A DNA stretch of 64,000 nt from Macrostomum hystrix (lineage: Eukaryota; Animalia; Platyhelminthes), in assembly GCA_950097015.1 (NCBI GenBank), contig CATNEN010000034.1:2232001-2296000 (forward strand), read 5' to 3'. The notes below the pieces were generated by a model. It was not told where the DNA came from. It saw only the letters and a program-made list of their open reading frames with translations, and did no database searches. A program made the position numbers and the translations under genes. Below, one piece after another: positions 17,548-61,525 of this stretch; positions within the stretch are counted from its first letter, which is position 1; every line of letters starts with the position of its first letter.

Positions 17548-20500
17548 CTAATCCACTGGTTTGGACTCCTGAAATCCGGCCATTATAAGTCGAACAAAAC
17601 CGCGAAAATCAACGTCGCCTTCATCGGAGCCACCTGTCATCGATTCGGCAAACATTTGGCGGGCCTGCAACTCAAGCGTCGGCTGGCCGAGACTCGTCAG
17701 GCAAGCGGCCAGCGACTTTGCGGACCAGACGGTGTCGCCGTCATCGTCAACAAGAAATTGGAAGGCGAGCTGCAGGTTGCGGTGACGTTCGCGGCACGAC
17801 TGATTTTTGAGACCACGACACACCAGCGTAACGAACTCTGGATAGCCAAGTTTACCAGAATTTCCGTTTCTAGCGATCTGAATAGTCTCCTATAAATGTT
17901 AGAGATTTGTTAGAGACTCATAATTGAGAAAAATTATCATTTGAATGGGCATCATTTCTAAATCAAAAGACCACAGAATGTTTTCCTTAAAATATGCTAT
18001 CCCTTCTCCTGTCTAGTTGTAGTAGTAGGTTGTTGAAATTTACACCACATTACTTTATATCCCAAAAACTTTTAAATTTCCTAGTACTTGGCTCGTAATG
18101 TACTCGTTATTCTGACTGACATCTAAAAGCTGCTACTAAAAATATCTAAACTTCAAATATTTCAGTTGAATGAAATAATCATTTGACTATCAAATGTTTC
18201 ACTTTCTCTCCGTGAATTTTCCATTCGGCTCACGAGCACGCGCATCAAAAATACTGTTTTCGTAATCAGTACAGTTTTATCCTTATTCTCTTATTCTTGA
18301 GTACTAAACTGACGGACCAGATATGAATTCAAACACGAAGAGAAGTGTAGCCATACATTTTTTTTCAACTATTCTGTATCTAGTATTCCATGACAGCAAA
18401 ACTTGGTTTCCTACATTCAGCCTTACGAAATAATACGACAGAGACTGTTCGGTTTGGTAGCACCTGGTCGGTTCGGGTCCTGGTCGGTAACGCCCTGTGC
18501 GTGATCTCCTACCCGAATTTATAGTGTATTACTTTTCCGATACGATTGGACAACTACAAAGACCACAACTTCCTCAACATGTGTGCTTAACAGTAGAAAT
18601 ACCACGCTATTTTAAATACCCCACAACTACAAAGACCACAACTTCCTCAACATGTGTGCTTAACAGTAGAAAAAGCACGCTATTTTAAATACCCCACAAC
18701 TACAAAGACCACAACTTCCTCAACATGTGTGCTTAACAGTAGAAATACCACGCTATTTTAAATACCCCACAACTACAAAGACCACAACTTCCTCAACATG
18801 TGTGCTTAACAGTAGAAATACCAAGCTATTTTAAATACCCCACTGCCTACTTCCCGATAGCTCCCAAACCGAATGACAGATTTTTGTGAAGGTCAACCAC
18901 ATCGATTCAAATTCCCCCCCTTTACGATGAACAGACTTCCAAAGCCATCCAGCGTCAGCATCGTCGAGTTGTTCAGCGATTCTTGTCGAAGACCCTGGTG
19001 ACAATGACAACTAACATTGCTGTATAAACGTCTATGGCAAATCCATATTGGTTAAAAAAATATAATCATTACAATATAGTCAGAAATAATACCCGAGGAC
19101 ATGATTACGTAATAAAATTTGTGAGCAGATAAAATTATGCCCATATTGGTTATTTTTGCCAACAGACACCCGAAGCGAATCATTGAATGTCTCACATATT
19201 TCGATGCCGATGTTTTTTCTGGAAGTTGTTTCATCAGATGGAGCGAAAAAATTTTGCCCGTGTTCTGGATATTCATGGCGATTGGTTGAATATTTTAGGA
19301 GACATCGAAAAAATATGGGCATTCATAATACCCCAGGTCTTTCTCTGCGACAAATTGGACGCACAATATTGATTTTCTACTTTTGCTAACGAAAAAAAAT
19401 CGGACGCGCTGATGCTGCTGCTCTGCTACATTCACTCGCGCATCTCTGTAACTGAGGACGTCGACGTCGTGTGCAGAGAAGCTTCAATCACTTATGAAGT
19501 TTTGGGTGTTTGAGAACACTTCTCTCAGGATGGCAGATCGGATCAGCCCTACATTTCTCAATGAGAGAAGTCCATTTGGTATTGATTTGCGACAACAGAA
19601 CGCTGCCCAAAAATAGGGTAAATAGCCTTACGAGGTACTGATTGTAGGATATTCCGCTAATTAATTTTTTTGTCTCTTCCTGAGGAGGTTGTAGCCTAGT
19701 TGTTAGAGAGTTTCGACTCACGGCTTGAAGGTCGAGGGTTCGATTCCCAAATCTACTGGAACAATTTGTGTCCTTTAGCAAGACACTTAACTCTGCATTG
19801 CTTCAGTTCACCCAGCTGTTAAATGGGTATCAGCATTAGTTAGGGTCATTGAGGCTGGGTGTCCCACCAGTCCATGGACTGAACAGCCGTACGCAGCCTT
19901 CAGATGCACCGCGCAATAGCTGCGGTCGTGCTGTCGGTTGCACATCTGGCCCGATTGGGGCAGGTGTAATCAATTATTTTTATTATAATGAGTTTTCCAC
20001 AGTTAGCTTAGTTCCTGCGTGTAATTAACTAATTAGTCATCCACAGAGACGCCGATGAGCACTAAATCATCATAAATGATTGTGGCTGTCTGTTTGATCT
20101 ATAAAAACACCCGATCTATCATTCACAACCGAGCAAAAGACAGCCAGCTGTGTTCCATGACCATAATCCATGATAGGAAGGAGCTGAAGCTGTGTTCTAA
20201 AGTTGACTCTATGAAAATATTGTGAGTTATAAATAACAAATTAAACACATCTATTTAGGCAGTCGTGTCTTGAGTTCTGACTCCTGGCCCCAGCTATGCA
20301 AAAGGTATTCATCGATTCTAAGAAAAGCATTATACGGCATCGTCATTTGTGCATAAATACCGTAAGTCAACTGTAATTTCTGTCGCGAATTTCAGCTCTG
20401 TGGGGGTAATTAGTTCTCTGCTGCTGGGGGGGGTTAGTTCTCTGCTGCTGGGGGGGGATTAGTTCTCTGCTGCTGGGGGGGATTAGTTCTCTGCTGCTGG

Positions 20501-28400: not shown

Positions 28401-31400
28401 GCCTTCCACAAGGTTTTATCGATTGTTCATCAAATTCACACGATGAAAATTCTTCATCGAGATCTGAAGCCTGAGAACATTCTGTTCAAAGAACCGTATG
28501 ACGTGCGAATATGTGACTTTGGACTTTCAAAGTGCGATTCCAGCAATAATCATAATCCTGGCGGAGGATCGAGCCAGGCGCAACACACTCACGACATTGG
28601 TACGACAGCATACATGGCGCCTGAACTACTAAAAAATCCACCACTTCCGCACAGCCGAAATTCTGATGCTTACGCACTCGGTCTAGTGTTTTTGGAGATG
28701 CTGACCATTTTTTGGAAATGATTCAGAGTCAGAGAAAATTGAAATTTTCCAGTTTCATCGAGAAGGAAAGATTCACAAGAAGGCAGAAATGTTCAAGGCT
28801 GAAACGGAGCTTATACAGAAACTGCTTTTCGAAGATCCAAAAAGGCGTCTCAGCGTTGAGGATGCATTGAAACATGAGCTGTTCTACACAGTACAATTGC
28901 CCTGTAACATTTGCTGTATTTCTTGCAAGGGAATCGAGGTCCTAAAGGAGCATCTATCAGGAAAGATGCATCAAAATAATCTTAAAAAGTGGAAATCAGA
29001 CGCAACCAGCGGGCCTCAGGCGGAGTCTCGAGAAACAACAGTCCCACGTCATGTCGCTAAGAGGGATAGTAACAATTACCATCAGATTGACACTACCGAG
29101 CAACTCGACTCTGACGCTCATTTAGTCGCAAGAAAGAAAGACAAAGAAAAAAAGACAATACAGAAGCTTCAAAGGCAACCTGCCGATGCCTTCCAGCAGC
29201 AACCTGTGCAGGAGTTGCCGGTAAATCAAGTACCAAAAAAATGTGACGAAGAAATAGAAAGTACTACAACAGAAGAATTCAATACGGTTCGTGCCGATGT
29301 TGAAGATCTGAAGACAAGAATGACGCAAATCGAAACGAAGCTTGATCAAATTCTGGCTCTTTTAAAACCGAAGTAAATACTGAAACCGAACAGCGAATTA
29401 CTGATTCTAAGTACTGTACTTTAGTTTTTCTCGAATTAGGGCGTACTTATGGTCAGCTGACATTGCTTTTTACATTAATTTTTTAATATAGTAAAATATG
29501 TTTTTCTCTATCATTTTCTCTAGACCATTTCCTGGAAAGTACATTTCCATTTCCTGAAAGCACTGTCTACTAGAATGATTAATAAATATAAGCAACTTTC
29601 GTGATAAGGAGTGTTACGAGCACTTTTAGTTCCAAACAGCGTCGATCATTGCCCAAACATGTATCTAAGATTTAGCCCGATTCTAAGAAATGACGACGAA
29701 GCTATCAAATCGGCAGCTCACCTGGATCGCCCAGATCATGCGGCATGGCCATTTGGTGATTGCGCTGCGATTTGGTCCCAGTAACTAGCCAGTACACCTG
29801 AGTGACGTCCTCCTCTGCTGCTGCCTTGGCTGTGGTCAATAATTATTATTGAGTTTTATTGATTATTGATGTGTGTTCAAGGACTTAAAATAGTACATCT
29901 AGGTAATTTAATCGGCTACATCAACTATAGCTCGGAGATTACAAACCGATTGTTATGAGGGCTAATTAATCAAGCATCGCAGAATTATAATTATTATACA
30001 AGTCTGTCTGAGAGCACAAAAGTGCACGAAGCCTGCATCTGCTAAAGAGGGTTATTCTGAATTCACTAAAAGCAAATTTACTAGTATATTAGCTAATTAC
30101 TCACGAGAGCTTCTATGCTTGAGTAAAATAGAGCAGATGCAGACTCAGAGCAAATAGAGCAATAGCTCACCGAAATCGTATTGCACCGCCACCTGCAGTT
30201 TGGGAAAGTTGGCCAATAATGCCCACGCAGCGTACGCGTGCACATCGTAGGTTGTAAACATCCGGTATTCGTGGCCCTCCAGGTAGGCAAAGGTGCCCAT
30301 TTCCTCGCGCACGGGGCAACGCCAGGACTTTAGCCGGTGCCAGTCAGCTGTCTGAGCCCCGTCATCAAGCCAGACGCTGCCTGAATCACTCAGGTAGTAA
30401 GCCTCGTTGAGCAGGGCCGACTTGAGCCAGTTCGGCAGGCTGGCGGGATCTTCATTGAGTATCGGCGCCTGCCACTCGTCGATGCGTTGCTGCCAGGACT
30501 GCGAGCTGGCGAAGGCGTGACGGGCCAGGTCGATGCTGGCAGCAGTTTGGTCGCCGGGAAACCAGCGCACATGACGACTGAAATGTTCATAAACTGACTT
30601 TAGTTAATTTTAATTCGAAGTACGCAGTCAAACTCTCCGAACCCACCGAGTGTAAGTATTCTCCGCAGCGCGAAAGTGAACTCTCGGCATGTGCCAGCTT
30701 AGGCAGAACCCGATGCCGTCAGCGTGCGATCCAGCTGCAACAACTCTTCCAGCGCAAACAGCCACAGCCAGGTGCTCGCCTGATTGAGTCACCTGCGCGG
30801 CTGTCTCGGCCGCCTCTGCACAAACGTCGGTTGGAGGACGGAGGCCGCCGGTTCGTTCGAGGCTGCGCCAAATTCCAGCAGCTGCCTGCCGGTCTGTCTT
30901 CGGGTTAAATCGTGGCCACAATGTCACAGTAACCTATAGATGGTTTGTGAGTTAGATGATTAGATTTTTTAAATAGTGTATAACGCAAAACGGACTTAAA
31001 AGAGGGCTATACGTAATGTTATTAGGGCTCAAAATATTGTTTGCTAACATTTGACACCCTTGATATTAGTCTAATGAATGTGATATTAGTCTAAAAAGCT
31101 TACGTTGCTACTCTGAACTGCCGAGATACCATAGGTGCACGGCATGTCGCCCCGAAACGTCTGGTGAATGAGACTACCGGCAATGCCTGACTCCGGGCAG
31201 CGGAAAGGCTCCACCGCGGCTCCGGCTGCGAGACTCTTCGGGGTTCCGTCACCATTCTGGAAGCAGAAGGTCACACTGACCTGCAAGTCCGAATCGGTAT
31301 CGTTCCAGACTGTCCACTCAAATAGGGTCAGTGGAAGACACGAGTCCTGAAAGGCGAAACGATTGAAATATCAGCAAAAAATGCACTAAGACTTTCAATA

Positions 31401-32137
31401 ACTACTCAATGCGGCATTTCCCATTATTATATTATTAAACATACCTTGTAATCGTGCGCTATAACGGGAGAAGTCTGTCTGCACAGCAGCCGCAGCCCCG
31501 GCACCAGATGGTAGACTGTCCAGCTCCTGGGATAGAGCCCATGGTAGGCACAGTCGGTCTCTTGAAGTCCCCCGGGATCTGAGCAGCAAAGCCACTCGCG
31601 ACGAAGAGCATTGAGCTTTTTAAACGGCCGGAACGCCAGTACTCGCTGCAACACTGGCGCCTGGGCGCCATCGCAACAACGTCGGACTGAAACAATGAAA
31701 CAATCAGCCTCCGGGATGGCGTACTCGTACAGTCCAGGCAGCATTTGAAAGCGGCAAAATTCTCCACGAAAACCGCGTCCGATACTTCCACAGCCGATGC
31801 CGCCTAGAGGGACACCGTAGATTGGCCGGTAAGGCTCCTGGTGCAGACAGTCAATGAATGGCCGACGTCTCTGTAGAAGACGCTTACGCAGGTAGAAGCG
31901 GAACAGGTAGCGCAGCGAAGCGCCCAGATACTCCAGGCACTGGCGAGGCCGGGGGCTTTGAAAGGGACGGCAGGGGGCAAAGCGCTTTGCCATTGTAAGC
32001 CGCCACCCGGCTTCGGGAACCTGTAGTTTGGCGAAAAGAGCGTCAGCTCGGTTTGGCGCCTCCGTAGCGGTATTGTTACCTTCCTCGGACGAGTTATTTT
32101 CATCAAGTAGCTTGCTCCAATAGTTCGCCGCTGCCAT
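25482..32137 (-). CDS. GBA2: Non-lysosomal glucosylceramidase (GH116), 885 aa, 7 exons
   Basis: Exons 31445-32137, 31104-31346, 30647-30933, 30171-30577, 29722-29829 (MPHDLGDP; absent from the ORF track), 26690-26908 and 25482-26182 join with consistent phases (2658 nt). Motifs GVPLGGIGCGSIGRGFRGEF, YLEGHEYRMFTTYDVH, WRDLNPKFVL, DQTYDAW and FQ/YQTPEA...YRSLGYMRPL match GBA2. Confidence 0.95.
26232..26592 (+). mobile_element. SINE family A in GBA2 intron 6
   Basis: Full family match with an ATT tail. Confidence 0.88.
27894..29376 (+). CDS. Intronless eIF2-alpha-kinase-like protein with a C-terminal matrin/JAZ-type zinc finger and coiled coil; ~493 aa if a 1-nt frameshift at 28708-28713 is corrected; nested antisense in GBA2 intron 5
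   Basis: Kinase motifs GQGGFG, YAIK, VREV, VKYHHSWYE + Ser-rich insert + LFIKMEY, HRDLKPEN, DFG, HTHDIGT..YMAPE and YALGLVFLEML. Removing one T joins ORFs 27894-28721 and 28789-29376 without a gap and completes the C-lobe (LIQKLLFEDPKRR). Zinc finger at 28903-28971; heptad repeats at 29278-29364. Confidence 0.8.
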
Positions 32138-33159
32138 CTGAAATTTTTTATCGGCGCATCTTATTATTTGTGCTTTCTTTAAGACGAGTAGTATTACAAA
32201 CAAAAGGGTATTTGTCAATCGAAAAAAATATTATGTTTGTGATGAACGAAAAGGAATTTCAATATCGTACTCGTATTATTTGTTGCTTAAGATGTAAGAA
32301 TTGTTCATTTCTTACTTTTCTCGAGTTGAACCTTGTAAGTTAGTTTACTATGAGCAGTGCCAAGAAACTTTAAAGAATTCTAATGTCAACGCTTGCCTTT
32401 TAGCATTTCAGTACTGAAGTGTCCTGTAGACAGAGCTCTAGTCCCGATTGCCACACTCCCTCTGGCTAGCCTTCGCTGCGTTCTCTAACTTCACATTTTA
32501 TGCATTTAACTCAGAATGCCGCATTTAGCAGTGGGTAGGGCACAAACGCTTGAACATTATAGACAGACATACAAGCCTGCATGATTTTCCGAGTATGTGC
32601 AAGACCTATGTATTGGTCATGCTGCCTCGATTGGCTCTTTGCACTCAGTGCATACACTGCCATCATGGCCAAGCCTATAGACACACCCAGTGATGCAAAG
32701 GATAGGAAAGCATTCTATACGAGTGCTCACGGCCACCCCTCGGTGCAGCTGAGCAACACGTCTGAGCAGATTCTAGCCCCTCTGCCACTATCACATTCTT
32801 TATTCATTACATTCGGTGTACATCCCGTGTCTCTACCTTCCTCCCACCCCGATTGTCATGTAAAGCTGCAAGTTTGTTCAGGCTTCTCATGCCTGGCCAC
32901 TACTGCCTGTTGTCCCTACATTAATCAATTTTTCAACAGCTTATTCTAGGCTATTTTTTACTTCTGTCATCATTGCACTTTCAACAATTATTCATATTGA
33001 CTGCAGTCGACAGTTAGCAATTGGATTTAGGATTTTAAGATTTAAGATTTAATATTAATACTGCGATCAGCAAGCATAGACCAGCAGATCAGCTGCCAAG
33101 AACATCAACTTTGAGGTAGTGTCTTCCAACACAGCAGAGACTCACTGCTAATCGATTAA

Positions 33160-36100
33160 CAGTAGAAGGACAACGGGGTGTTTCAAAGAACCAAAATTTT
33201 TCTTTTTCTGTAACTCCCAAAATATTCCACCAATCGCCATGAAAATCCAGAACACGGACTAAAATATTCAACCAATCGCCATGAAAATCCAGAACACGGC
33301 CTAAAATATTCAACCAATCGCCATGAAAATCCAGAACACGGACTAAAATATTCAACCAATCGCCATGAAAATCCAGAACACGGCCTAAAATATTCAACCA
33401 ATCGCCAGGAAAATCCAGAACACGGCCTAAAATATTCAACCAATCGCCATGAAAATCCAGAACACGGCCTAAAATATTCAACCAATCGTCATGAGAATCC
33501 AGAACACGGCCTAAAATATTCAACCAATCGTCATGAGAATCCAGAACACGGCCTAAAATATTCAACCAATCGCCATGAAAATCCAGAACACGGCCTAAAA
33601 TATTCAACCAATCGCCATGAAAATCCAGAACACGGCCTAAAATATTCAACCAATCGCCATGAAAATCCAGAACACGGCCTAAAATATTCAACCAATCGCC
33701 ATGAAAATCCAGAACACGGCCTAAAATATTCAACCAATCGCCATGAAAATCCAGAACACGGCCTAAAATATTCAACCAATCGCCAGGAAAATCCAGAACA
33801 CGGCCTAAAATATTCAACCAATCGCCATGAAAATCCAGAACACGGCCTAAAATATTCAACCAATCGCCATGAAAATTCAGAACACGGGCTAGAATATTCA
33901 ACCAATCGCCATGAAAATCCAGAACACGGCCTAAAATATTCAACCAATCGCCATGAAAATCCAGAACACGGCCTAAAATATTCAACCAATAGCCATGAAA
34001 ATTCAGAACACGGCCTAAAATATTCAACCAATCGCCATGAAAATTCAGAACACGGCCTAAAATATTCAACCAATCGCCATGAAAATCCAGAACACGGCCT
34101 AAAATATTCAACCAATCGCCATGAAAATCCAGAACACGGCCTAAAATATTCAACCAATCGCCATGAAAATCCAGAACACGGCCTAAAATATTCAACCAAT
34201 CGCCAGGAAAATCCAGAACACGGCCTAAAATATTCAACCAATCGCCATGAAAATCCAGAACACGGTCTAAAATATTCAACCAATCGCCAGGAAAATCCAG
34301 AACACGGCCTAAAATATTCAACCAATCGCCATGAAAATCCAGAACACGGCCTAAAATATTCAACCAATCGCCATGAAAATCCAGAACACGGTCTAAAATA
34401 TTCAACCAATCGCCAGGAAAATCCAGAACACGGCCTAAAATATTCAACCAATCGCCATGAGAATCCAGAACACGGCCTAAAATATTCAACCAATCGCCAT
34501 GAAAATCCAGAACACGGGCTAAAATATTCAACCAATAGCCAGGAAAATCCAGAACACGGCCTAAAATATTCAACCAATCGCCATGAGAATCCAGAACACG
34601 GCCTAAAATATTCAACCAATCGCCAGGAGAATCCAGAACACGGCCTAAAATATTCAACCAATCGCCAGGAAAATCCAGAACACGGCCTAAAATATTCAAC
34701 CAATCGCCAGGAGAATCCAGAACACGGCCTAAAATATTCAACCAATCGCCAGGAAAATCCAGAACACGGGCTAAAATATTCAACCAATCGCCAGTAAAAT
34801 CCAGAACACGGGCTAAATTATTCAACCAATCGCCAGGAAAATCCAGAACACGGCCTAAAATATTCAACCAATCGCCATGAAAATCCAGAACACGGCCTAA
34901 AATATTCAACCAATCGCCAGGAAAATCCAGAACACGGCCTAAAATATTCAACCAATCGCCAGGAAAATCCAGAACACAGGCTAAAATATTCAACCAATCG
35001 CCATGAAAATCCAGAACACGGGCTAAAATATTCAACCAATCGCCATGAAAATCCAGAACACGGCCTAAAATATTCAACCAATCGCCAGGAAAATCCAGAA
35101 CACGGGCTAAAATATTCAACCAATCGCCAGGAAAATCCAGAACACGGGCTAAAATATTCAACCAATCGCCATGAAAATCCAGAACACGGCCTAAATTATT
35201 CAACCAATCGCCAGGAAAATCCAGAACACGGCCTAAAATATTCAACCAATCGCCAGGAAAATCCAGAACACGGGCTAAAATATTCAACCAATCGCCATGA
35301 AAATCCAGAACACGGCCTAAAATATTCAACCAATCTCCAGGAAAATCCAGAACACGGCCTAAAATATTCAACCAATCGCCAGGAAAATCCAGAACACGGG
35401 CTAAATTATTCAACCAATCGCCAGGAAAATCCAGAACACGGGCTAAAATATTCAACCAATCGCCATGAAAATCCAGAACACGGCCTAAAATATTCAACCA
35501 ATCGCCATGAAAATCCAGAACACGGCCTAAAATATTCAACCAATCGCCATGAAAATCCAGAACACGGCCTAAATTATTCAACCAATCGCCATGAAAATCC
35601 AGAACACGGGCTAAAATATTCAACCAATCGCCATGAAAATCCAGAACACGGCCTAAAATATTCAACCAATCGCCATGAAAATCCAGAACACGGCCTAAAA
35701 TATTCAACCAATCGCCAGGAAAATCCAGAACACGGCCTAAAATATTCAACCAATCGCCATGGAAATCCAGAACACGGCCTAAAATATTCAACCAATCGCC
35801 ATGAAAATTCAGAACACGGCCTAAAATATTCAACCAATCGCCAGGAAAATCCAGAACACGGCCTAAAATATTCAACCAATCGCCATGAAAATCCAGAACA
35901 CGGCCTAAAATATTCAACCAATCGCCATGAAAATCCAGAACACGGCCTAAAATATTCAACCAATCGCCATGAAAATCCAGAACACGGCCTAAAATATTCA
36001 ACCAATCGCCATGAAAATCCAGAACACGGCCTAAAATATTCAACCAATCGCCATGAAAATCCAGAACACGGCCTAAAATATTCAACCAATCGCCAGGAAA

Positions 36101-39100
36101 ATCCAGAACACGGGCTAAAATATTCAACCAATCGCCATGAGAATCCAGAACACGGCCTAAAATTTTCAACCAATCGTCATGAGAATCCAGAACACGGCCT
36201 AAAATATTCAACCAATCGTCATGAGAATCCAGAACACGGCCTAAAATATTCAACCAATCGCCATGAAAATCCAGAACACGGCCTAAAATATTCAACCAAT
36301 CGCCATGAAAATCCAGAACACGGCCTAAAATATTCAACCAATCGCCATGAAAATCCAGAACACGGCCTAAAATATTCAACCAATCGCCATGAAAATCCAG
36401 AACACGGCCTAAAATATTCAACCAATCGCCATGAAAATCCAGAACACGGCCTAAAATATTCAACCAATCGCCAGGAAAATCCAGAACACGGCCTAAAATA
36501 TTCAACCAATCGCCATGAAAATCCAGAACACGGCCTAAAATATTCAACCAATCGCCATGAAAATTCAGAACACGGGCTAGAATATTCAACCAATCGCCAT
36601 GAAAATCCAGAACACGGCCTAAAATATTCAACCAATCGCCATGAAAATCCAGAACACGGCCTAAAATATTCAACCAATCGCCATGAAAATTCAGAACACG
36701 GCCTAAAATATTCAACCAATCGCCATGAAAATTCAGAACACGGCCTAAAATATTCAACCAATCGCCATGAAAATCCAGAACACGGCCTAAAATATTCAAC
36801 CAATCGCCATGAAAATCCAGAACACGGCCTAAAATATTCAACCAATCGCCATGAAAATCCAGAACACGGCCTAAAATATTCAACCAATCGCCAGGAAAAT
36901 CCAGAACACGGCCTAAAATATTCAACCAATCGCCATGAAAATCCAGAACACGGTCTAAAATATTCAACCAATCGCCAGGAAAATCCAGAACACGGCCTAA
37001 AATATTCAACCAATCGCCATGAAAATCCAGAACACGGCCTAAAATATTCAACCAATCGCCATGAAAATCCAGAACACGGTCTAAAATATTCAACCAATCG
37101 CCAGGAAAATCCAGAACACGGCCTAAAATATTCAACCAATCGCCATGAGAATCCAGAACACGGCCTAAAATATTCAACCAATCGCCATGAAAATCCAGAA
37201 CACGGGCTAAAATATTCAACCAATAGCCAGGAAAATCCAGAACACGGCCTAAAATATTCAACCAATCGCCATGAGAATCCAGAACACGGCCTAAAATATT
37301 CAACCAATCGCCAGGAGAATCCAGAACACGGCCTAAAATATTCAACCAATCGCCAGGAAAATCCAGAACACGGCCTAAAATATTCAACCAATCGCCAGGA
37401 GAATCCAGAACACGGCCTAAAATATTCAACCAATCGCCAGGAAAATCCAGAACACGGGCTAAAATATTCAACCAATCGCCAGTAAAATCCAGAACACGGG
37501 CTAAATTATTCAACCAATCGCCAGGAAAATCCAGAACACGGCCTAAAATATTCAACCAATCGCCATGAAAATCCAGAACACGGCCTAAAATATTCAACCA
37601 ATCGCCAGGAAAATCCAGAACACGGCCTAAAATATTCAACCAATCGCCAGGAAAATCCAGAACACAGGCTAAAATATTCAACCAATCGCCATGAAAATCC
37701 AGAACACGGGCTAAAATATTCAACCAATCGCCATGAAAATCCAGAACACGGCCTAAAATATTCAACCAATCGCCAGGAAAATCCAGAACACGGGCTAAAA
37801 TATTCAACCAATCGCCAGGAAAATCCAGAACACGGGCTAAAATATTCAACCAATCGCCATGAAAATCCAGAACACGGCCTAAATTATTCAACCAATCGCC
37901 AGGAAAATCCAGAACACGGCCTAAAATATTCAACCAATCGCCAGGAAAATCCAGAACACGGGCTAAAATATTCAACCAATCGCCATGAAAATCCAGAACA
38001 CGGCCTAAAATATTCAACCAATCTCCAGGAAAATCCAGAACACGGCCTAAAATATTCAACCAATCGCCAGGAAAATCCAGAACACGGGCTAAATTATTCA
38101 ACCAATCGCCAGGAAAATCCAGAACACGGCCTAAAATATTCAACCAATCGCCATGAAAATCCAGAACACGGCCTAAAATATTCAACCAATCGCCATGAAA
38201 ATCCAGAACACGGCCTAAAATATTCAACCAATCGCCATGAAAATCCAGAACACGGCCTAAATTATTCAACCAATCGCCATGAAAATCCAGAACACGGGCT
38301 AAAATATTCAACCAATCGCCATGAAAATCCAGAACACGGCCTAAAATATTCAACCAATCGCCATGAAAATCCAGAACACGGCCTAAAATATTCAACCAAT
38401 CGCCAGGAAAATCCAGAACACGGCCTAAAATATTCAACCAATCGCCATGGAAATCCAGAACACGGCCTAAAATATTCAACCAATCGCCATGAAAATTCAG
38501 AACACGGCCTAAAATATTCAACCAATCGCCAGGAAAATCCAGAACACGGCCTAAAATATTCAACCAATCGCCATGAAAATCCAGAACACGGCCTAAAATA
38601 TTCAACCAATCGCCATGAAAATCCAGAACACGGCCTAAAATATTCAACCAATCGCCATGAAAATCCAGAACACGGCCTAAAATATTCAACCAATCGCCAT
38701 GAAAATCCAGAACACGGCCTAAAATATTCAACCAATCGCCATGAAAATCCAGAACACGGCCTAAAATATTCAACCAATCGCCAGGAAAATCCAGAACACG
38801 GCCTAAAATATTCAACCAATCGCCATGAAAATCCAGAACACGGCCTAAAATATTCAACCAATCGCCAGGAAAATCCAGAACACGGCCTAAAATATTCAAC
38901 CAATCGCCATGGAAATCCAGAACACGGCCTAAAATATTCAACCAATCGCCATGAAAATTCAGAACACGGCCTAAAATATTCAACCAATCGCCAGGAAAAT
39001 CCAGAACACGGCCTAAAATATTCAACCAATCGCCATGAAAATCCAGAACACGGCCTAAAATATTCAACCAATCGCCATGAAAATCCAGAACACGGCCTAA

Positions 39101-42100
39101 AATATTCAACCAATCGCCATGAAAATCCAGAACACGGCCTAAAATATTCAACCAATCGCCATGAAAATCCAGAACACGGCCTAAAATATTCAACCAATCG
39201 CCATGAAAATCCAGAACACGGGCTAAAATATTCAACCAATCGCCAGGAAAATCCAGAACACGGCCTAAAATATTCAACCAATCGCCATGAGAATCCAGAA
39301 CACGGCCTAAAATATTCAACCAATCGCCATGAAAATCCAGAACACGGGCTAAAATATTCAACCAATAGCCAGGAAAATCCAGAACACGGCCTAAAATATT
39401 CAACCAATCGCCATGAGAATCCAGAACACGGCCTAAAATATTCAACCAATCGCCAGGAGAATCCAGAACACGGCCTAAAATATTCAACCAATCGCCAGGA
39501 AAATCCAGAACACGGCCTAAAATATTCAACCAATCGCCAGGAGAATCCAGAACACGGCCTAAAATATTCAACCAATCGCCAGGAAAATCCAGAACACGGG
39601 CTAAAATATTCAACCAATCGCCAGTAAAATCCAGAACACGGGCTAAATTATTCAACCAATCGCCAGGAAAATCCAGAACACGGCCTAAAATATTCAACCA
39701 ATCGCCATGAAAATCCAGAACACGGCCTAAAATATTCAACCAATCGCCAGGAAAATCCAGAACACGGCCTAAAATATTCAACCAATCGCCAGGAAAATCC
39801 AGAACACAGGCTAAAATATTCAACCAATCGCCATGAAAATCCAGAACACGGGCTAAAATATTCAACCAATCGCCATGAAAATCCAGAACACGGCCTAAAA
39901 TATTCAACCAATCGCCAGGAAAATCCAGAACACGGGCTAAAATATTCAACCAATCGCCAGGAAAATCCAGAACACGGGCTAAAATATTCAACCAATCGCC
40001 ATGAAAATCCAGAACACGGCCTAAATTATTCAACCAATCGCCAGGAAAATCCAGAACACGGCCTAAAATATTCAACCAATCGCCAGGAAAATCCAGAACA
40101 CGGGCTAAAATATTCAACCAATCGCCATGAAAATCCAGAACACGGCCTAAAATATTCAACCAATCTCCAGGAAAATCCAGAACACGGCCTAAAATATTCA
40201 ACCAATCGCCAGGAAAATCCAGAACACGGGCTAAATTATTCAACCAATCGCCAGGAAAATCCAGAACACGGGCTAAAATATTCAACCAATCGCCATGAAA
40301 ATCCAGAACACGGCCTAAAATATTCAACCAATCGCCATGAAAATCCAGAACACGGCCTAAAATATTCAACCAATCGCCATGAAAATCCAGAACACGGCCT
40401 AAATTATTCAACCAATCGCCATGAAAATCCAGAACACGGGCTAAAATATTCAACCAATCGCCATGAAAATCCAGAACACGGCCTAAAATATTCAACCAAT
40501 CGCCATGAAAATCCAGAACACGGCCTAAAATATTCAACCAATCGCCAGGAAAATCCAGAACACGGCCTAAAATATTCAACCAATCGCCATGGAAATCCAG
40601 AACACGGCCTAAAATATTCAACCAATCGCCATGAAAATTCAGAACACGGCCTAAAATATTCAACCAATCGCCAGGAAAATCCAGAACACGGCCTAAAATA
40701 TTCAACCAATCGCCATGAAAATCCAGAACACGGCCTAAAATATTCAACCAATCGCCATGAAAATCCAGAACACGGCCTAAAATATTCAACCAATCGCCAT
40801 GAAAATCCAGAACACGGCCTAAAATATTCAACCAATCGCCATGAAAATCCAGAACACGGCCTAAAATATTCAACCAATCGCCATGAAAATCCAGAACACG
40901 GCCTAAAATATTCAACCAATCGCCATGAAAATCCAGAACACGGCCTAAAATATTCAACCAATCGCCATGAAAATCCAGAACACGGCCTAAAATATTCAAC
41001 CAATCGCCATGAAAATCCAGAACACGGCCTAAAATATTCAACCAATCGCCAGGAAAATCCAGAACACGGGCTAAAATATTCAACCAATCGCCAGGAAAAT
41101 CCAGAACACGGGCTAAAATATTCAACCAATCGCCATGAAAATCCAGAACACGGCCTAAATTATTCAACCAATCGCCAGGAAAATCCAGAACACGGCCTAA
41201 AATATTCAACCAATCGCCAGGAAAATCCAGAACACGGGCTAAAATATTCAACCAATCGCCATGAAAATCCAGAACACGGCCTAAAATATTCAACCAATCT
41301 CCAGGAAAATCCAGAACACGGCCTAAAATATTCAACCAATCGCCAGGAAAATCCAGAACACGGGCTAAATTATTCAACCAATCGCCAGGAAAATCCAGAA
41401 CACGGGCTAAAATATTCAACCAATCGCCATGAAAATCCAGAACACGGCCTAAAATATTCAACCAATCGCCATGAAAATCCAGAACACGGCCTAAAATATT
41501 CAACCAATCGCCATGAAAATCCAGAACACGGCCTAAATTATTCAACCAATCGCCATGAAAATCCAGAACACGGGCTAAAATATTCAACCAATCGCCATGA
41601 AAATCCAGAACACGGCCTAAAATATTCAACCAATCGCCATGAAAATCCAGAACACGGCCTAAAATATTCAACCAATCGCCAGGAAAATCCAGAACACGGC
41701 CTAAAATATTCAACCAATCGCCATGGAAATCCAGAACACGGCCTAAAATATTCAACCAATCGCCATGAAAATTCAGAACACGGCCTAAAATATTCAACCA
41801 ATCGCCAGGAAAATCCAGAACACGGCCTAAAATATTCAACCAATCGCCATGAAAATCCAGAACACGGCCTAAAATATTCAACCAATCGCCATGAAAATCC
41901 AGAACACGGCCTAAAATATTCAACCAATCGCCATGAAAATCCAGAACACGGCCTAAAATATTCAACCAATCGCCATGAAAATCCAGAACACGGCCTAAAA
42001 TATTCAACCAATCGCCATGAAAATCCAGAACACGGCCTAAAATATTCAACCAATCGCCAGGAAAATCCAGAACACGGGCTAAAATATTCAACCAATCGCC

Positions 42101-42565
42101 ATGAGAATCCAGAACACGGCCTAAAATTTTCCGCTCTTCAACGATACTTTTCAACCGATACGATACAGTACAGAGCATTCAACGATTCTCGCCGGGGTGT
42201 CTGGTGGCAAAACCACCAAAATAGACAAAACATTTTCTGCCCACAATGTTTCATCAGTAGCCATGTCGGCTACTATTTTTGACTATATTCTATTGATTAT
42301 ATATCTAATTTATACGCTTTTAAACCAATGTGGATTCGCCATAGAGGTGAATGCAGAGCAATGGTAAATGCCCTTGTCACAAGGGTCTTCGACAAGAATG
42401 GCTGAATAACTCAAAATTGCTCAATTGGACGGCTTTGAAAGTTAGTTCATCAGACGGGAAATTTTACTTAAAATAGTGGACTTTCACGAAAATCGGTCAT
42501 TCAGTTTGGGAGCTATCGTGAAGTAGGCTGTGCTATTTTAATTACTCCCTGTGTTCTTTCTACTG
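33160..42565 (+). mobile_element. TTAA-flanked MITE (family M, piggyBac-like target site) inflated to 9.4 kb by an internal satellite
   Basis: TTAA (33156-33159)|CAGTAGAAGGACAACGGGG on the left and CCCTGTGTTCTTTCTACTG|TTAA (42566-42569) on the right: imperfect TIRs matching at 16/21. The unique portions are homologous to the ~550-bp copy at 18810 and to the copies near 44050, 51995 and 59366. Confidence 0.8.
33214..42127. repeat. 42-bp satellite array, ~212 units, with higher-order periodicity
   Basis: Unit AAAATATTCAACCAATCGCCATGAAAATCCAGAACACGGCCT. Diagnostic variants recur at offsets of 2688, 2142 and 1134 bp (64, 51 and 27 units). Confidence 0.98.
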
Positions 42566-42608
42566 TTAATAGGGCTTGTTTGGGCTAGAAAACTGCAATC
42601 CGACTCCT

Positions 42609-42975
42609 AATATAAAAATAATAATTGCAGGAGGACTGCGGGCAATGGCACATCATTTGGTGACGATAGACCCGCAGCCAGCGAGGAGGCAATTCTGCCC
42701 ATTTCGCTGACTCCTGAGCACACACGCACACAAATACCGTACGCAGGCACACGCTCACGCAGGTGTGTACATCTGCCCTGACTTTCTCATCGTCAGGCAG
42801 TGTACACTCTCACTGTGGCTTGGAGGTTGGCCCTCAAGGGCGTAAGTCGCACGACAAGCCACCAAGCCTTTTCTCCGCGGCTGCGCCCCAAATAAATGTG
42901 GCCTCGCCGTGGAATTGAACTTAGGGACCGTGGTGCGAGAGGCAAACGCGTTAGCCGCTCTGCCACCGACCCCCT
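42609..42975 (-). mobile_element. SINE family A, full length with a 12-bp target-site duplication
   Basis: AATCCGACTCCT at 42597-42608 and 42976-42987 flanks the head and the (AAT)n tail. Confidence 0.92.
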
Positions 42976-44049
42976 AATCCGACTCCTGTATCGGCTTAAA
43001 AAACTACTCATTTGAAGTGTTTCGGAGAAACCAAACAAACTCTGAAAAGCATTGAAATCGCTGTTGAAATTTCTAGCTGTAAGCCTTCATCAGTTTCCTA
43101 TTATTTTTTATATTGATTCCAGAAGCTCTAAACTAAAACGGCGAAATTTTATAGAAGAGTTGAGGCGCTTGCAGAGCAAAGTGATGCGGTTCCGTTCACT
43201 TTGATACCATGCTCAAGTGGAAGCTTTTCATGGCGCGGACTTCATGCAGGCGTTCAGGTGGGTCCCAGCGATGCATGAGTGCTCAATGGAGCAGGCCTCT
43301 AATAACAAAGTTAGAAATTGCCGTGCAACTTCAAGTGGAAAGTATAATTTTTTCATTCCGCAACAGAGAGGCAGGTAAGAAGCACTTCCTTTTTGTGTTA
43401 ATATTTGGGAACATTTTTGGCTCGAGCTGGCCAGGTGAAATTTTCTGCTACTTCGAAGTAATAAGCGAAGCGTCTTTCTGGAACTTTTCCGACTAATGCT
43501 TTATTTAATCACTAACTGATTGCGGCATATAAAACTCGAAAAAACACGTAACATGGATTTTTAATGCTCAACTTATCTAATTTACATTCTGAATGAGAAA
43601 TACTGTAAAATTATAAGCGACGCACTTGTAAGTATGCAGAACTCAAATATTGAGGAGCAAAATTAAGGTTTCAAAAAGAATTTTGCACTTAATTTTATTG
43701 ATCGAGCGAAAATCGCTGTGCAGAAAAAATCGACTGATTATGAAAAACTTCTTTCGTAATAAAAGGCAGTCTGATGATAAGATGGTTGACAATCGTAAGC
43801 TACTAAAAGTACATTTTTTTTTCATTTTAGATGCATTCGATTTTCCTGAATGAGAAATTATGCTTTTGTTGAATATTGTAAAATTTTTGGTAACCATTTT
43901 CATAGGTAACATTATATTTTAAGTTTAGCTTCGAAACTTTTCGATCAATTCAATCGAGACAATCGAGCGTGGAGTTCGATCAGTATTAGCAGTGGAAAGC
44001 CCACGGGAATATTTCAAGTGGAAGTTTATTTTATTTTATTTAAATAAAC

Positions 44050-44382
44050 CCGCAGTTTATTTTTCTGTTTCCTAAAAAATGCAAGCAATCGTCCTGCAAA
44101 TGCTAAACACATGCAAAAAATTTCCCCTTTATTCGATGAAAGAACTTCCAGAATCACATAATTTCGGCATCGTTGAGATATTAAACGATTCTCGTCGGGT
44201 TTCTGTTGGCAAAAACCAACAACATTTTTCTGCATTAATTTTGATTTGAAAATTTTGATTCACATGGTGGACTTTCATGAAAATGGTCAATCGGTTGGGG
44301 AGCTATCATGATGTAGGCGGTGGGTATTTGAAATCGCACGTGGTCTTTCCCCATGGGGGGAAATAGAGTGGTCCTTCTACTG
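44050..44382 (+). mobile_element. MITE family M copy with a degenerate left end
   Basis: Ends GTGGTCCTTCTACTG|TTAA (44383-44386); a degenerate 42-bp unit lies at ~44072-44112. Confidence 0.72.
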
Positions 44383-44425
44383 TTAAAAAACTGTTTAAAA
44401 AACTATTTTCATCAGTATTTCAATC

Positions 44426-48622: not shown

Positions 48623-48769
48623 CTGGAATGAAGGCTCAGTTAGACCGGTTTATGAGTATCTCGCACTAAAGGACCATTAGGAGTAGAATGACAGGAAATT
48701 ATACTTCTTACACTTTTTTCGATTATCACAGAAAAATACAAAGGTCTTCTATTGATACAACTATATAAA

Positions 48770-49130
48770 ACTTATAATAATAATAAGAATACTTGTACTT
48801 GCCAGAGGGCTGTGGGCGATGGCACGTAATTTGGGGATAGTTCCCCACAGCAAGCGAGCAGGCATTTCTGTCGATTCCACTGATTCCTCACATGCATACA
48901 GATACTGTCACAGGTATTCGCTCACACTGGTGTGAACATCTGCCCTGACTTTCTCATCGTCAGGCAGTGTACATTTTCAGTGCGCCTTGGAGTTCGGCCC
49001 TCAAGGGCGTAAATTGCTCGACGATCCAACAAGTCTTGACTCTGCGGCTGCACCCCAAATGAATGTGGCCTCGCCGCGGAATCGAGCTCATGGACCTCGG
49101 TGCGAGAGGCAAACGCGTTAACCGCTCTAA
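48770..49130 (-). mobile_element. SINE family A
   Basis: (AAT)n tail at ~48775 and reverse-complement body up to GGCAAACGCGTTAACCGCTCT. Confidence 0.85.
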
Positions 49131-51994: not shown

Positions 51995-52426
51995 TAAAAA
52001 GTAGGGCTGTTTCAAATACACAAATTGTTCCTTTTGTGAACCTCTAAAAATATTCAACCAATCGCTATTTAAATCCAGAGCAAGGGCCAAACTTTTCCGC
52101 TCTATACGAAGAAAAAATTTCCAGAATCACAAAACATCGGCATCGTCGAGATATTCAACGGTTCTCGTCGGATGTCTAGTGATAAAAACAACTATACAGG
52201 CATAAATTTTCAGCTCACAAAATACAGAGCATTGTTAGTTGTCCTTGTCACCAGGGTCTTCGACAAGAATCGCTGACTAGGACGGCTGTGAACATTTCGA
52301 TCTAAATGGTGGATTTTCAGGAAAATCGGACATTCGGTTTTGGGAGCTGTCGTGAAGTAGGCAGTGGGTATTTGAAATACCTCCCGTGGTCTTTCCCCAG
52401 GGGAGCACAGCGTGGTATTCCTACTG
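51995..52426 (+). mobile_element. MITE family M copy
   Basis: One diverged 42-bp unit at ~52045-52087; ends TGGTATTCCTACTG|TTAA (52427-52430). Confidence 0.78.
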
Positions 52427-52498
52427 TTAAGCACATAGTACTGCACAGTAAATTTCTGCTATCAGTAAAACAAATTCAGTGACTGCACTGGCAACAAA

Positions 52499-59200: not shown

Positions 59201-60850
59201 GCTCTGCTAAGCGTCAGCTTGTAGCCGATCCAAGGCGTCCAGCGTCTTTCATCGGCCAATCGGATCTGTCAATTATAAAAAAGAATATTCTTAATCTGCT
59301 ATCCATTTTCAAAGTGAGACAGTGAGCACTTTCACTCAACCATTTGGCCACTCTCACACCAATAACAGTGGAATGACCACATTTTCCGTATCTCCTAAAA
59401 TATTCAACCAATCGGCATGAAAATCCTGAACACGGCCGAAAATTTTCCGCTCTTTTCGACGAAACAACTTCCGGAATCACTAAAAACATCGGAATCGTTG
59501 AGATATTCAACGATTCTCGTCGGATGTTTGCGGCTAAACCACGAAAATTGACATAATTTTACTGCTCACAAAGGTGGCAGATTAGGTAAGTACATTTTGG
59601 GTATTAAATATTTATTATGTTAATTTTTTCTGAAAGTTATTTAATCGGAAAATTTTGATACATATGGTGGACATTCACGAAAATTATTAGTTTAAGTATT
59701 TCGTCTTACACCAAGCGAAGCAGCGATTTCCGCACTGGGCATCCATCCAGTACATGGTGATTCTCGACCCGGCGGTCACTCGAATGTAGATCGCGCTCGA
59801 TAGCATCACGAGCTTCGGTAGAGGAACCGCCAGATGCAGTATAAGGCTCGTCAGGTTGGCGCCTCTACGGCCAGGCAGGAGCTCATACTGAGCACCCTTC
59901 AGCGACCTGCCGGAGCTTGAGAACACCGAAACTATCAATGGCAGCGGCAGCGGCGAGTCCACAGGTGCAAACAGGTGTAGCGTGTAGGCATTGTGGGGCT
60001 CCGGACAAATCAGATACTCGGGCAGGCCAGCAGCGTCAGCTGGACCGTGGAATTCAAACTGGTCCAATCGCTGCTGTGTCTGTCGGAGGGTGCGGCTTTG
60101 ATTCGTGAGTCGAGCGGCGCATCCAAAGGATGAGTACAGCTGTTCGGTCCACGGACTGGTGGGCCGCCAAACCAACCCGAATTTCCATCCCAGCTAATGC
60201 TGGCACCCATTTTACAACCGAGTGAACTAAACTTAATAGGGAATCCAGTGTCTAGCTCAGCAATACAAACTGTTTGCTGTGAGCACAGATTTGAACTCTC
60301 GACCTCTTAGTTAGGAGTCAAACTTGTCACAATCAAGAGCCAATAATATTTTTTATCTGCAGGAGGGCTGCGGGCAATGGCACATTATTTGGTGACACTA
60401 GACCCTTAGCCAGCGAATAGTCAATTCTTCATATTTTCGCTGACTCCTGAGCACACACTCACGCAGGTGTGTACATCTGCCGTGAATTTCTCATCGTCAG
60501 GAAGTGTACACTCTCACTGTACCTTGGAGGGTGGCCTTCTGACGTAAATTGCTCGTCAAGCCACCAAGCCTTCTCTATGCGGCTGCGCCCCAAATAAATG
60601 TGGCCTCGCCGCGGAATCGAGCTCAGAGACCTTGGTGCGAAAGTCAAACGCGTTAGACCTCTCTGCCAGTCAGCCCCATTTAAGAGCCAAGACTTCTGCA
60701 GCAATTAAAGCCGAGTTTCCAGTCCCTCTGACTTACCACCGGTGCGTAATTCGCAGCTCTGCAGCTAGAGGGTTCCGGGTGATGCAACCTCAACAGGTGA
60801 GCTGCACAGGCCGTGAGGCACAGAAGCAGACAGGTGGCTCTAGGTAGCAT
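56292..60850 (-). CDS. Orphan single-pass type-I membrane protein (~530 aa, 7 exons): signal peptide, Cys-containing ectodomain, TM, alpha/beta cytoplasmic domain
   Basis: Phase-consistent model: 60737-60850, 59710-60058, 59071-59206, 58289-58607, 58163-58217, 57925-58095 and 56292-56743. Signal peptide MLPRATCLLLCLTACAA; TM TLTVFAMGAGFCIVCFLGVLAVGC followed by GRRRVRR. The exon 2 and exon 3 acceptors are the least certain. Confidence 0.6.
56754..57830. repeat. 26-bp minisatellite (~41 copies) filling an intron
   Basis: Unit GAGACAGTGAGATTAGATATCCAGAT; the ACATCT variant dominates the right-hand block. Confidence 0.97.
58690..59033 (-). mobile_element. SINE family A
   Basis: Reverse-complement family match. 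Confidence 0.85.
59366..59684 (+). mobile_element. MITE family M copy, truncated on the right
   Basis: ATAA|CAGTGGAA start and one near-perfect 42-bp unit (CCTAAAATATTCAACCAATCGGCATGAAAATCCTGAACACGGCC). Confidence 0.75.
60100..60325 (-). mobile_element. SINE family B, degenerate
   Basis: CCCAGCTAATGCTGGCACCCATTT and downstream body similar to 24876-25190. Confidence 0.65.
60345..60676 (-). mobile_element. SINE family A
   Basis: Reverse-complement family match from TGCAGGAGGGCTGCGGGC to CTCTGCCAG. Confidence 0.85.

Positions 60851-61474: not shown

Positions 61475-61525
<51 letters not shown>

Follow-up and report, generated by a model that had tools for sequence, protein, structure and literature searches.

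How does a tandem satellite array begin? As a rule the birth of a satellite has to be reconstructed in retrospect, from a source element that is already in decay. In the flatworm Macrostomum hystrix a 42-bp tandem array lies inside a small TTAA-flanked MITE, other copies of which are found nearby, and the locus raises the question of whether the array was derived from the MITE itself and by which route it grew. The window analysed is a stretch of 64,000 nucleotides (contig CATNEN010000034.1), to which all positions refer unless another contig is named. The reading favoured below is that the array very probably grew in situ from a 42-bp stretch in the left arm of an old TTAA-flanked MITE copy, by slippage followed by block duplications, as a neutral by-product.

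Structure of the array and of its host element

The array was delimited with Tandem Repeats Finder at 33219-42131 (period 42, 212.2 copies, 96% matches, no indels). When the unit was searched for with up to 3 mismatches, 214 matches were obtained against 0 expected by chance; 213 of these lie inside the array and one at 19255-19296. The motif TTAACAGTAGAA was found at 33156 (+) and at 42558-42569 (-), and these sites form the outer limits of the array together with both arms. The preliminary description, which had placed the array between TTAA duplications and matching terminal repeats and had estimated that some 545 bp would be left once the extra units were subtracted, was borne out on both points, 543 bp remaining when the 33156-42569 copy was collapsed to a single unit. 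The left arm joins the array, and the array joins the right arm, exactly at the points predicted from the family consensus, and the consensus unit of the array is identical to that of the family at 41 of 42 positions. Immediately past the array, some ~45 bp at the start of the right arm could not be aligned, the sequence there having diverged too far or been lost.

Consensus positions 64-105 are covered once by each of the four siblings in the window. The single unit is free of gaps at 19255, 52047 and 59397, and near 44075 it is visible in a gapped alignment only; with that qualification the earlier count of exactly one unit per sibling was confirmed. The copy originally given as 18810-19360 and proposed as the unexpanded counterpart does hold one unit, but its far end is decayed and without a TTAA; its bounds are given here as 18807-19344. 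All features are collated in Table 1.

The flanks of the array-bearing copy are unique in the genome, and a genome-wide comparison of them returned no paralogous empty site. Its neighbours are an EGF-repeat gene and, at a distance of about 1 kb, a gene of the GH116 (GBA2-like) type. The length of the array is known from one assembly.

Table 1. Positions of the array, its host element, internal blocks, siblings and expanded copies (units of the array are counted from 0).
Feature	Position	Strand	Remarks
Left flanking TTAA, presumed target-site duplication	33156..33159	.	From TTAA-outside-terminus statistics of the family
Left arm of MITE with terminal inverted repeat CAGTAGAAGGACAACGGGGTGTTTCAAAGAACC	33160..33218	+	59 bp; with TTAA = consensus 1-63 at 84%
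212 whole 42-bp units, consensus AAAATATTCAACCAATCGCCATGAAAATCCAGAACACGGCCT	33219..42122	+	= MITE consensus 64-105; 23 unit variants
AAAATTTTC, right-hand member of the unit-bracketing direct repeat	42123..42131	+	Left member AAAATATTC begins every unit
Right arm of MITE, terminal inverted repeat ...TTCTTTCTACTG at end	42123..42565	+	443 bp; 84.5% identity to consensus 171-569
Right flanking TTAA	42566..42569	.	
Block A, units 7-63	33513..35906	+	Source pattern of internal block duplications; from unit-type string
Block A', units 71-127	36201..38594	+	Near-identical repeat of A; offset 64 units (2,688 bp)
Block A'', units 143-178	39225..40736	+	Unit types identical to units 28-63; lowest mismatch at offset 115 units
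Block A''', units 186-205	41031..41870	+	Unit types identical to units 44-63; offset 142 units
Unexpanded sibling	18807..19344	-	One unit at 19255-19296; 81% identity to consensus 9-569
Sibling with internal deletion	43986..44386	+	One unit; consensus ~218-457 absent; right TTAA present
Sibling	52004..52430	+	One unit at 52047-52088
Partial sibling	59382..59684	+	One unit at 59397-59438
Expanded copy	C34:2.72 Mb		46-48 units
Expanded copy	C2		29 units, mixed 42/39 bp
Expanded copy	C24		22 near-identical units, both arms kept; arms 70-79% identical to consensus
Expanded copy	C1		13 units, both recognisable TTAA/TIR ends
Expanded copy	C3		6 units
Two expanded copies			2 units each
Expanded copy			Three 32-bp units

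The host MITE family

With the right arm as the query, at least 2,430 first-look candidates (74-81% identity) were obtained from the 220-Mb genome. The family consensus is non-coding and 598 bp long (569 bp in a short-end form). No Pfam-bearing ORF was found within the MITE and no RNA-family match for the element, the lone hit (E = 0.63) being a chance one. A common architecture, including a terminal repeat of ~33 bp (consensus CAGTAGAAAGACCACGGGGGTATTTCAAATACCC), was present in 21/21 aligned sequences: 19 copies from other parts of the genome, a single sibling from the window, and the array element reduced to one unit. The terminal repeat lies within a degenerate palindrome of ~215 bp. The family thus combines the small size, lack of coding capacity, high copy number and terminal inverted repeats of a MITE. 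It is old. A chance pair of inverted SINEs was considered and rejected: every copy has the full architecture, there are consistent differences between its two halves, short internal-deletion derivatives (L055, L059 and L060) retain both ends, and the RNA-family search was negative.

Of 28 family termini that could be recognised, 15 have TTAA as the adjoining outer sequence, compared with a background of 0.5%, and on these family statistics TTAA is presumed to be the true target-site duplication. The tetranucleotide is palindromic. Since it is invariant in the family, matching TTAA flanks cannot prove a single insertion; it is the architecture of the element that supports one.

The assignment to a superfamily was approached through the termini and through a putative autonomous partner. 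Next to TTAA the MITE begins CAGTAGAAAGACC and the piggyBac of Trichoplusia ni begins CCCTAGAAAGATA, with the core TAGAAAGA at the same offset; this core is the only part of the MITE end that resembles T. ni piggyBac. The first three bases are CAG in the MITE and CCC in T. ni, so that the terminal CCC/CCY...GGG feature of piggyBac is lacking, and the MITE terminal repeat differs further in being part of a long degenerate palindrome. TTAA is also the target of Kolobok elements (PMC6004289). The purine-purine (AG/GG) ends that accompany TTAA in Kolobok are likewise absent, the first base after TTAA being C, with AG at positions 2-3.

A total of 112 matches to PF13843 (DDE_Tnp_1_7) was found in the genome. 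In the best 12 of these loci neither TTAACAGTAGAA nor similarity to the MITE was detected (BLAST against MITE copies). Where piggyBac transposase loci of this genome were read by scanning for TTAA-flanked inverted ends, the ends begin with CC; two young families end CCTCTTCC.../CCACGAGAAGAC... or CCCCGAAAACCC..., and neither resembles the MITE. Pairing of 90 near-perfect 23-nt termini yielded no plus/minus pair a few kb apart, and the search for an autonomous transposase with the same terminal repeats, which the preliminary description had suggested, was therefore negative for the best 12 loci and the 90 termini. The piggyBac label given there is unproven, as TTAA is not exclusive, the ends read CAG rather than CC and the best 12 transposase loci provide no link. 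The host family is probably of piggyBac type, an assignment treated here as putative.

Expansion at other loci

The same stretch is expanded in at least seven other copies, with a period of ~42 bp in six of them (2 to ~48 units) and of 32 bp in one. Altogether at least 8 loci carry two or more units (~15 kb in 220 Mb in sum), and every one of them adjoins a MITE arm; the largest arrays at other loci reach 2 kb. The search was performed with near-consensus units and is biased towards arrays with similar units. Expansion is rare: among 29 copies sampled by their right arm, one unit was found in 16, none in 13 and two or more in 0. When copies with arrays are compared, their arms resemble one another no more than they resemble the consensus, and the near-identical units between the much-diverged arms of the C24 copy indicate that expansion happens in old copies.

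As expected of a satellite derived from a transposable element, the monomer forms a long head-to-tail array here and occurs singly inside other copies of the element. Abundant multi-locus arrays independent of the MITE were not found, all arrays located keeping at least one arm, and the earlier proposal accordingly withstands this comparison. With a unit size of 42 bp the array is of the minisatellite class and at an early stage.

Origin of the unit and growth of the array

The unit corresponds to consensus positions 64-105. A diverged, inverted version of it is found in the other arm, as part of the long degenerate palindrome. In the consensus the unit is bracketed by the direct repeat CTAAAATATTC / CTAAAATTTTC, which matches at 10 of 11 positions and has a spacing of exactly 42 bp; no such direct repeat accompanies the right-arm counterpart. 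This 42-bp-spaced repeat is a slippage substrate. The origin of the satellite from a MITE-internal unit with both ends retained, as first proposed, is upheld by the unit in the consensus and by the joins between arms and array.

The starting point would have been a non-coding, TTAA-flanked inverted-repeat element of ~570-600 bp with one unit in its left arm. Slipped-strand mispairing or microhomology-mediated repair between the 11-bp direct repeats may have produced the first duplication. From two copies onward, replication slippage and unequal sister-chromatid exchange could have enlarged and homogenised the array, and a few very recent multi-unit block duplications (up to 2.7 kb) would then have raised the count from ~64 to 212 units. 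The anatomy, the direct repeat, the recurrence at other copies and the block structure are observed directly in the assembly; the molecular steps are those that this pattern suggests. Late growth took place via near-identical multi-unit blocks of up to 2.7 kb, with only 2 of 57 units differing between blocks A and A'.

The only long ORF of the element, of 3,029 aa, runs through the array on the minus strand. A coding repeat was rejected: 3 of 6 unit frames are open, variant sites are synonymous in 3 cases and non-synonymous in 13, and the ORF is a by-product of the 42-bp period. For annotation, the 3,029-codon ORF should be regarded as an artefact and the 9-kb block as one old transposon copy between two genes. 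The array itself is most likely a neutral by-product between these genes rather than a functional module.

Mobilisation of the array-bearing element as a block, envisaged in the preliminary description, was not supported. Between its own terminal repeats no more than 20 of 34 positions agree, and the family is an old one; movement as a block today is unlikely because the ends have decayed.

Alternative explanations

The arrays may not all be independent, array-bearing MITEs or array DNA having moved between loci by transposition of an expanded MITE, by ectopic recombination or by re-insertion. This is an unlikely explanation, for which several unit variants are relevant. A CC-to-GG double change occurs genome-wide only in the C1 array, the C3 array and one single-unit copy on C29, and a G-to-A change just downstream of the array is common to C1 and C3; the rare GG variant in both arrays hints that not all arrays are independent. 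The arms of C1 and C3 are nevertheless 82.6% identical, which is about the value for two independent family members. Among arrays, the CAGG unit variant (101 exact hits) is restricted to three, the one at 33219-42122 among them, but it also occurs in the single-unit copy L008. Exact matches to the 34-nt probe were obtained for just 12 single-copy first units; with so small a baseline little weight attaches to the lack of CAGG in these units, and relatedness of the arrays via CAGG was dropped as an argument. Consensus units of the arrays are nearer to the family consensus than the host arms are, although a near-consensus query favours the finding of arrays with similar units. At the locus studied, the match at 41 of 42 positions despite an arm divergence of 12-18% tells against the favoured reading and points either to early expansion or to exchange with other copies; had the unit aged like the arms, such a match would have a chance of P ~0.01 at 15% divergence and ~0.07 at 10% (own calculation). 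If arrays did move, a traceable series would lead from the single unit via an array in an intact MITE and arrays with one arm to a satellite in dispersal, for which MITE copies in their thousands would serve as landing pads; the family would already behave as a dispersing satellite and not as a collection of local expansions that arose independently.

That the array is real but its 9-kb length inflated or otherwise misassembled is quite unlikely. Assemblers have difficulty in counting repeats such as the blocks of 57, 36 and 20 units, whose copies are identical or nearly so; against this, distinct unit variants mark the block bounds and follow one another consistently, a contig of 7.8 Mb in an assembly of 42 contigs suggests long reads, and arrays of up to 2 kb are carried by other loci.

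Very improbable is a role of the unit as a subterminal protein-binding (transposase-binding) motif whose function favours or drives its multiplication, a possibility raised in the preliminary description. The unit does lie ~60 bp from the end, the usual place of such motifs in many DNA transposons, and the same stretch was expanded repeatedly. Its conservation, determined in the aligned copies other than the array-bearing element, is average for the element (0.80 vs 0.785 for the whole; rank 237 of 523 windows), so that the binding motif gained no support and a conserved functional motif was rejected. Moreover, the counterpart in the other arm is strongly diverged, and no autonomous element with the MITE ends was found in the loci and termini surveyed above. 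The 42-bp-spaced direct repeat explains the recurrence without any function.

It is hardly credible that the two ends belong to different MITE insertions flanking, or recombined around, a pre-existing or captured satellite: the invariant TTAA makes the flank match uninformative and the right arm is rearranged over its initial ~45 bp, but the left arm stops at consensus 63, the units are 64-105 and the right arm continues from 106 without foreign sequence in between, the arms are correctly oriented to each other and similarly diverged, and no array of the unit without a MITE arm was found among those located.

Comparison with known systems

The proposed amplification in place from the MITE's own arm was compared with three published systems. 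Xmix/Xstir of Xenopus belongs to the T2-MITE family of the Kolobok superfamily, with TTAA as target site, and MITE, composite and array forms coexist there (PMC6004289, PMC12628747). In both systems an internal segment of a high-copy TTAA MITE was amplified in tandem. The ends of T2-MITEs begin AGGRR and were assigned to Kolobok, whereas those of the present family begin CAGTAGAAAG; Xstir is a large genome-wide repeat family, in contrast to the small total of array DNA in M. hystrix; and Xstir has been proposed to arise through excision of stem-loops between adjacent elements, where slippage at direct repeats is proposed here.

The miDNA4 element of Xenopus, a Tc1/mariner MITE with a satellite, was described in the model of Scalvenzi and Pollet (PMC12628747). 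Its internal repeat occurs singly or in arrays of variable length, as here, and its monomer lies between short direct repeats proposed as drivers of copy-number change (PMC12628747). The arrays of miDNA4 are predicted to lose their MITE ends over time (PMC12628747); complete, one-armed and decayed array stages are all present in the M. hystrix genome. The target site is TA there and TTAA here, and the superfamily differs. A further difference concerns direction: for miDNA4, capture by the MITE of a repeat that already existed is suggested (PMC12628747), whereas the present unit is part of the MITE's own palindromic body, which sets the direction as from MITE to array.

DTC84, pearl and DINE-1-type elements of bivalves and insects are likewise non-autonomous and have a central tandem repeat related to satellites (PMC3879986). 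Their core repeats number up to ~5 and are joined by a microsatellite, the target duplication is AA, and a relationship to Helitrons is probable; in the present family one unit is standard, and expansion is rare and locus-specific, with up to 212 units.

The route from MITE to satellite has thus already been published for Xmix/Xstir and miDNA4, and the array described here adds a clean example and no new mechanism. Flatworms are not named in the MITE/satellite literature compared here. A single assembly shows the source MITE with its two ends, the bracketing direct repeat by which the 42-bp period is set, siblings that did not expand, and a gradation of smaller and one-armed arrays, which makes Macrostomum hystrix a good teaching or test case of the MITE-to-satellite model.

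Structure of the array element and its host family

The window (C34:2232001-2296000; C-numbers denote contigs, L-numbers loci elsewhere) belongs to an assembly of 220 Mb in 42 contigs. Tandem Repeats Finder placed one array at 33219-42131 (period 42, 212.2 copies, 96% matches, no indels), and 214 matches to the 42-bp unit were obtained in a window search with up to three mismatches (0 expected). The array lies within a TTAA-flanked MITE, both edges of which were read directly; collapsed to one unit, this element measures 543 bp, in agreement with the ~545 bp of the preliminary description, and it is a real, unusually clean case of a MITE-internal array. The window contains eight instances of TTAACAGTAGAA, against 0.45 expected. 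Because the terminal repeats of the array element agree at only 20 of 34 positions, its mobilisation as a block, previously envisaged, is unlikely today.

With the right arm as query, 2,430 first-look candidates were obtained genome-wide, the best other copies being 74-81% identical. An alignment was made of 21 sequences: the array element reduced to a single unit, one sibling (another MITE copy in the window) and 19 copies from elsewhere. All share one architecture, and a 598-bp consensus was derived from them, with TTAA flanks, a ~33-bp terminal inverted repeat (CAGTAGAAAGACCACGGGGGTATTTCAAATACCC) and a long body that forms a degenerate palindrome: reverse-complemented, its right ~215 bp align with its left ~215 bp. 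TTAA stands immediately outside 15 of 28 recognisable termini (background 0.5%), the remainder being mostly one-base variants. Three copies (L055, L059 and L060) are short internal-deletion derivatives with both ends kept; these derivatives, the constant architecture and the lack of an RNA-family match speak against two inverted SINEs. Copies diverge from the consensus by ~20%, and the genome has no more than four perfect 23-nt termini and 90 near-perfect ones, so the family is old; it is also abundant and real.

The 42-bp unit corresponds to consensus positions 64-105, and the right arm holds its diverged inverted counterpart, as expected for a piece of the palindromic body. In the array element, consensus position 63 closes the left arm and position 106 opens the right one, with no foreign DNA between. 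Since the unit is native to the consensus and the arms rejoin exactly at 63/106, the direction was from MITE to array and not the capture of a pre-existing satellite. Matching TTAAs alone cannot prove one insertion, because TTAA is present at every copy; it is the exact architecture that supports the derivation of both ends from a single insertion. The earlier observation of one unit in each window sibling was borne out: all four cover positions 64-105 once, a gap-free single unit being seen at 19255, 52047 and 59397.

Features of the array element, the window and other expanded loci
Feature	Position	Strand	Details
Left TTAA	33156-33159
Left arm			59 bp, left TTAA to array; starts CAGTAGAAGG
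Whole 42-bp units	33219-42122		212
Right arm			443 bp, array to right TTAA; starts AAAATTTTCCGCTC, ends CTTTCTACTG
Right TTAA	42566-42569
ORF, 3,029 codons	33089-42178	-
Sibling	18807-19344	-	81% identical to consensus
Sibling	43986-44386	+	internal deletion
Sibling	52004-52430	+	near full length
Sibling	59382-59684	+	partial
Rhodopsin-type GPCR	16094-16768	+	Pfam
GH116 (GBA2-like glucosidase) gene	25482-32218	-	Pfam
Protein kinase, then zf-met finger	27894-29376	+	Pfam
EGF/EGF_CA-repeat gene	44426-53482	-	Pfam at 44426-46111 and 52499-53482
Tandem array	13426-13810		41/23 bp
Tandem array	20401-20819		24 bp x17
Tandem array	44433-44592		39 bp x4; just after MITE copy ending 44386
Tandem array	49946-51771		20 bp x87; just before MITE copy at 52004
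Tandem array	55690-56063		GACT x91
Tandem array	56753-57828		26 bp x41
Tandem array	61359-62619		TAGT x315
Tandem array	63235-63992		16 bp x47
Expanded locus	C34:2.72 Mb		46-48 units; right arm and terminal repeat kept, left arm lost
Expanded locus	C2:7.106 Mb		29 units, mixed 42/39 bp; only part of left arm kept
Expanded locus	C24:0.845 Mb		22 almost identical units; both arms kept
Expanded locus (L063)	C1:6.734 Mb (C1:6733841-6734347)		13 units; both TTAA/terminal-repeat ends kept
Expanded locus (L062)	C3:1.335 Mb (C3:1335338-1335598)		6 units; only right arm kept
Expanded loci	C39 and C12		2 units each; portions of both arms kept
Expanded locus	C12, second locus		three 32-bp units; left end and its TTAA kept, array followed by start of right arm

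Growth and recurrence of expansion

Rewritten as a variant string, the 212 units comprise 23 variants. Units 7-63 recur at 71-127 (offset 64 units, 2,688 bp) with 2 of 57 units differing, and units 28-63 and 44-63 recur identically at 143-178 and 186-205, respectively. Because such large blocks recur identically or nearly so, a diversified array of ~64 units probably tripled very recently through multi-unit duplications. Blocks recurring in this way bear the hallmark of unequal exchange, or perhaps of miscounting during assembly.

On the consensus, CTAAAATATTC leads into the unit and CTAAAATTTTC leads out of it; the two agree at 10 of 11 positions and bracket the unit at a spacing of exactly 42 bp, and a comparable direct repeat is absent at the right-arm counterpart of the unit. 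A pair of this kind is the textbook substrate of slipped-strand mispairing or microhomology-mediated duplication; either process, acting between the bracketing repeats, could account for the expansion, the spacing setting the 42-bp period.

That other arrays might have no MITE ends was not found to be so: some are without one end, none without both. The arms of array-bearing copies resemble each other no more than random family members do. At the C24 locus the units are almost identical, yet the arms around them match the consensus at only 70-79%, which shows that expansion takes place in copies that are old and immobile. It is a rare event in the family: among 29 copies sampled by the right arm, 16 had one unit, 13 none recognisable and 0 two or more.

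The consensus of the array and that of the family agree at 41 of 42 positions, with host arms 12-18% diverged; for a unit that aged like the arms, one difference or fewer has P ~0.01 at 15% divergence and ~0.07 at 10% (our calculation), so that such closeness is unlikely under equal ageing. This leaves some room for a transfer of array DNA or of expanded elements between MITE copies, as do two variants of the unit. A CC-to-GG change was found genome-wide in the C3 and C1 arrays and otherwise only in one single-unit copy (L081, C29:6604148); both arrays also have a G-to-A change just downstream in common, although the arms of the two are no more than 82.6% identical. CAGG, a further variant with 101 exact hits, is restricted among arrays to three, including that of the window, but it is also carried by a single-unit copy (L008), and its absence among exact single-copy units is weak evidence because exact probe matches number just 12 among single-copy first units. 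Such a transfer is considered improbable, and expansion within old, immobile copies is the preferred reading.

Superfamily assignment

The T. ni piggyBac end is TTAA-CCCTAGAAAGATA (PMC3078864) and that of the MITE TTAA-CAGTAGAAAGACC; both carry the 8-bp core TAGAAAGA at the same offset, but the MITE does not share the terminal CCC. TTAA is likewise targeted by Kolobok elements and the T2-MITEs belonging to them, with ends that begin with two purines (PMC6004289), whereas the first base of the MITE is C. The genome contains 112 PF13843 (piggyBac transposase) matches; no autonomous partner was found, the best 12 of the 112 loci sharing neither ends nor similarity with the MITE. The piggyBac label of the preliminary description was drawn from TTAA and from the resemblance of the terminal repeat; the MITE is probably, though unproven, of piggyBac type.

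Two young piggyBac families were also encountered (L069, L071, L072 and L078 on C2, C39, C7 and C38; L075, L076 and L080 on C1, C34 and C10), with elements of ~2.64 and 2.78 kb, copies 99.5-99.9% identical, mostly intact ORFs (601 aa in 5 of the 7 named copies) and TTAA flanks in most. Each family has strongly asymmetric ends (CCTCTTCC.../CCACGAGAAGAC... and CCTCTTCAAACC.../CCCCGAAAACCC...) that have nothing in common with the MITE, and both families look recently active.

Function, coding potential and genomic setting

A proposed role of the unit as transposase-binding motif found no support, its conservation (0.80; rank 237 of 523 windows) being no better than that of the whole element (0.785). 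The 3,029-codon ORF spans the whole array (peptide repeat GRVLDFHGDWLNIL; 3 synonymous and 13 non-synonymous variant sites). It was rejected as a coding repeat: it is an artefact that arises because 42 is divisible by 3 and three of the six unit frames are open, although gene-prediction software is likely to call it.

The array is located between the start of the GH116 gene, ~1 kb upstream of its first coding exon, and the end of the EGF-repeat gene, in gene-rich surroundings with many further tandem arrays. The window is unusually array-rich, and two arrays (44433; 49946-51771) lie 47-230 bp from MITE copies. At 18550-18843 a 73-bp unit is repeated four times (97% alike), each made up of 37 bp of flanking DNA, TTAA and the first 32 bp of the sibling's terminal repeat; it is a tandem duplication straddling a transposon boundary, so in this area such duplication is not restricted to the 42-bp unit. 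Just to the right of the array element, ~218 bp (42697-42913) are 91% identical, reversed, to DNA within MITE copy L068 (C12:2590500-2594800) and represent a second repeat family associating with MITE copies; the C2 array has a related stretch (window 42648-42766) upstream of it.

Comparison with known systems

The Xenopus TTAA T2-MITE Xmix gave rise to Xstir arrays, and in miDNA4 an internal monomer between short direct repeats occurs singly or arrayed, the arrays being predicted to lose their MITE ends over time (PMC12628747, PMC6004289). A less close parallel is offered by MITE-like elements of bivalves and insects that contain core repeats (PMC3879986). The MITE-to-array route has already been described, and the window array is a further instance of it.
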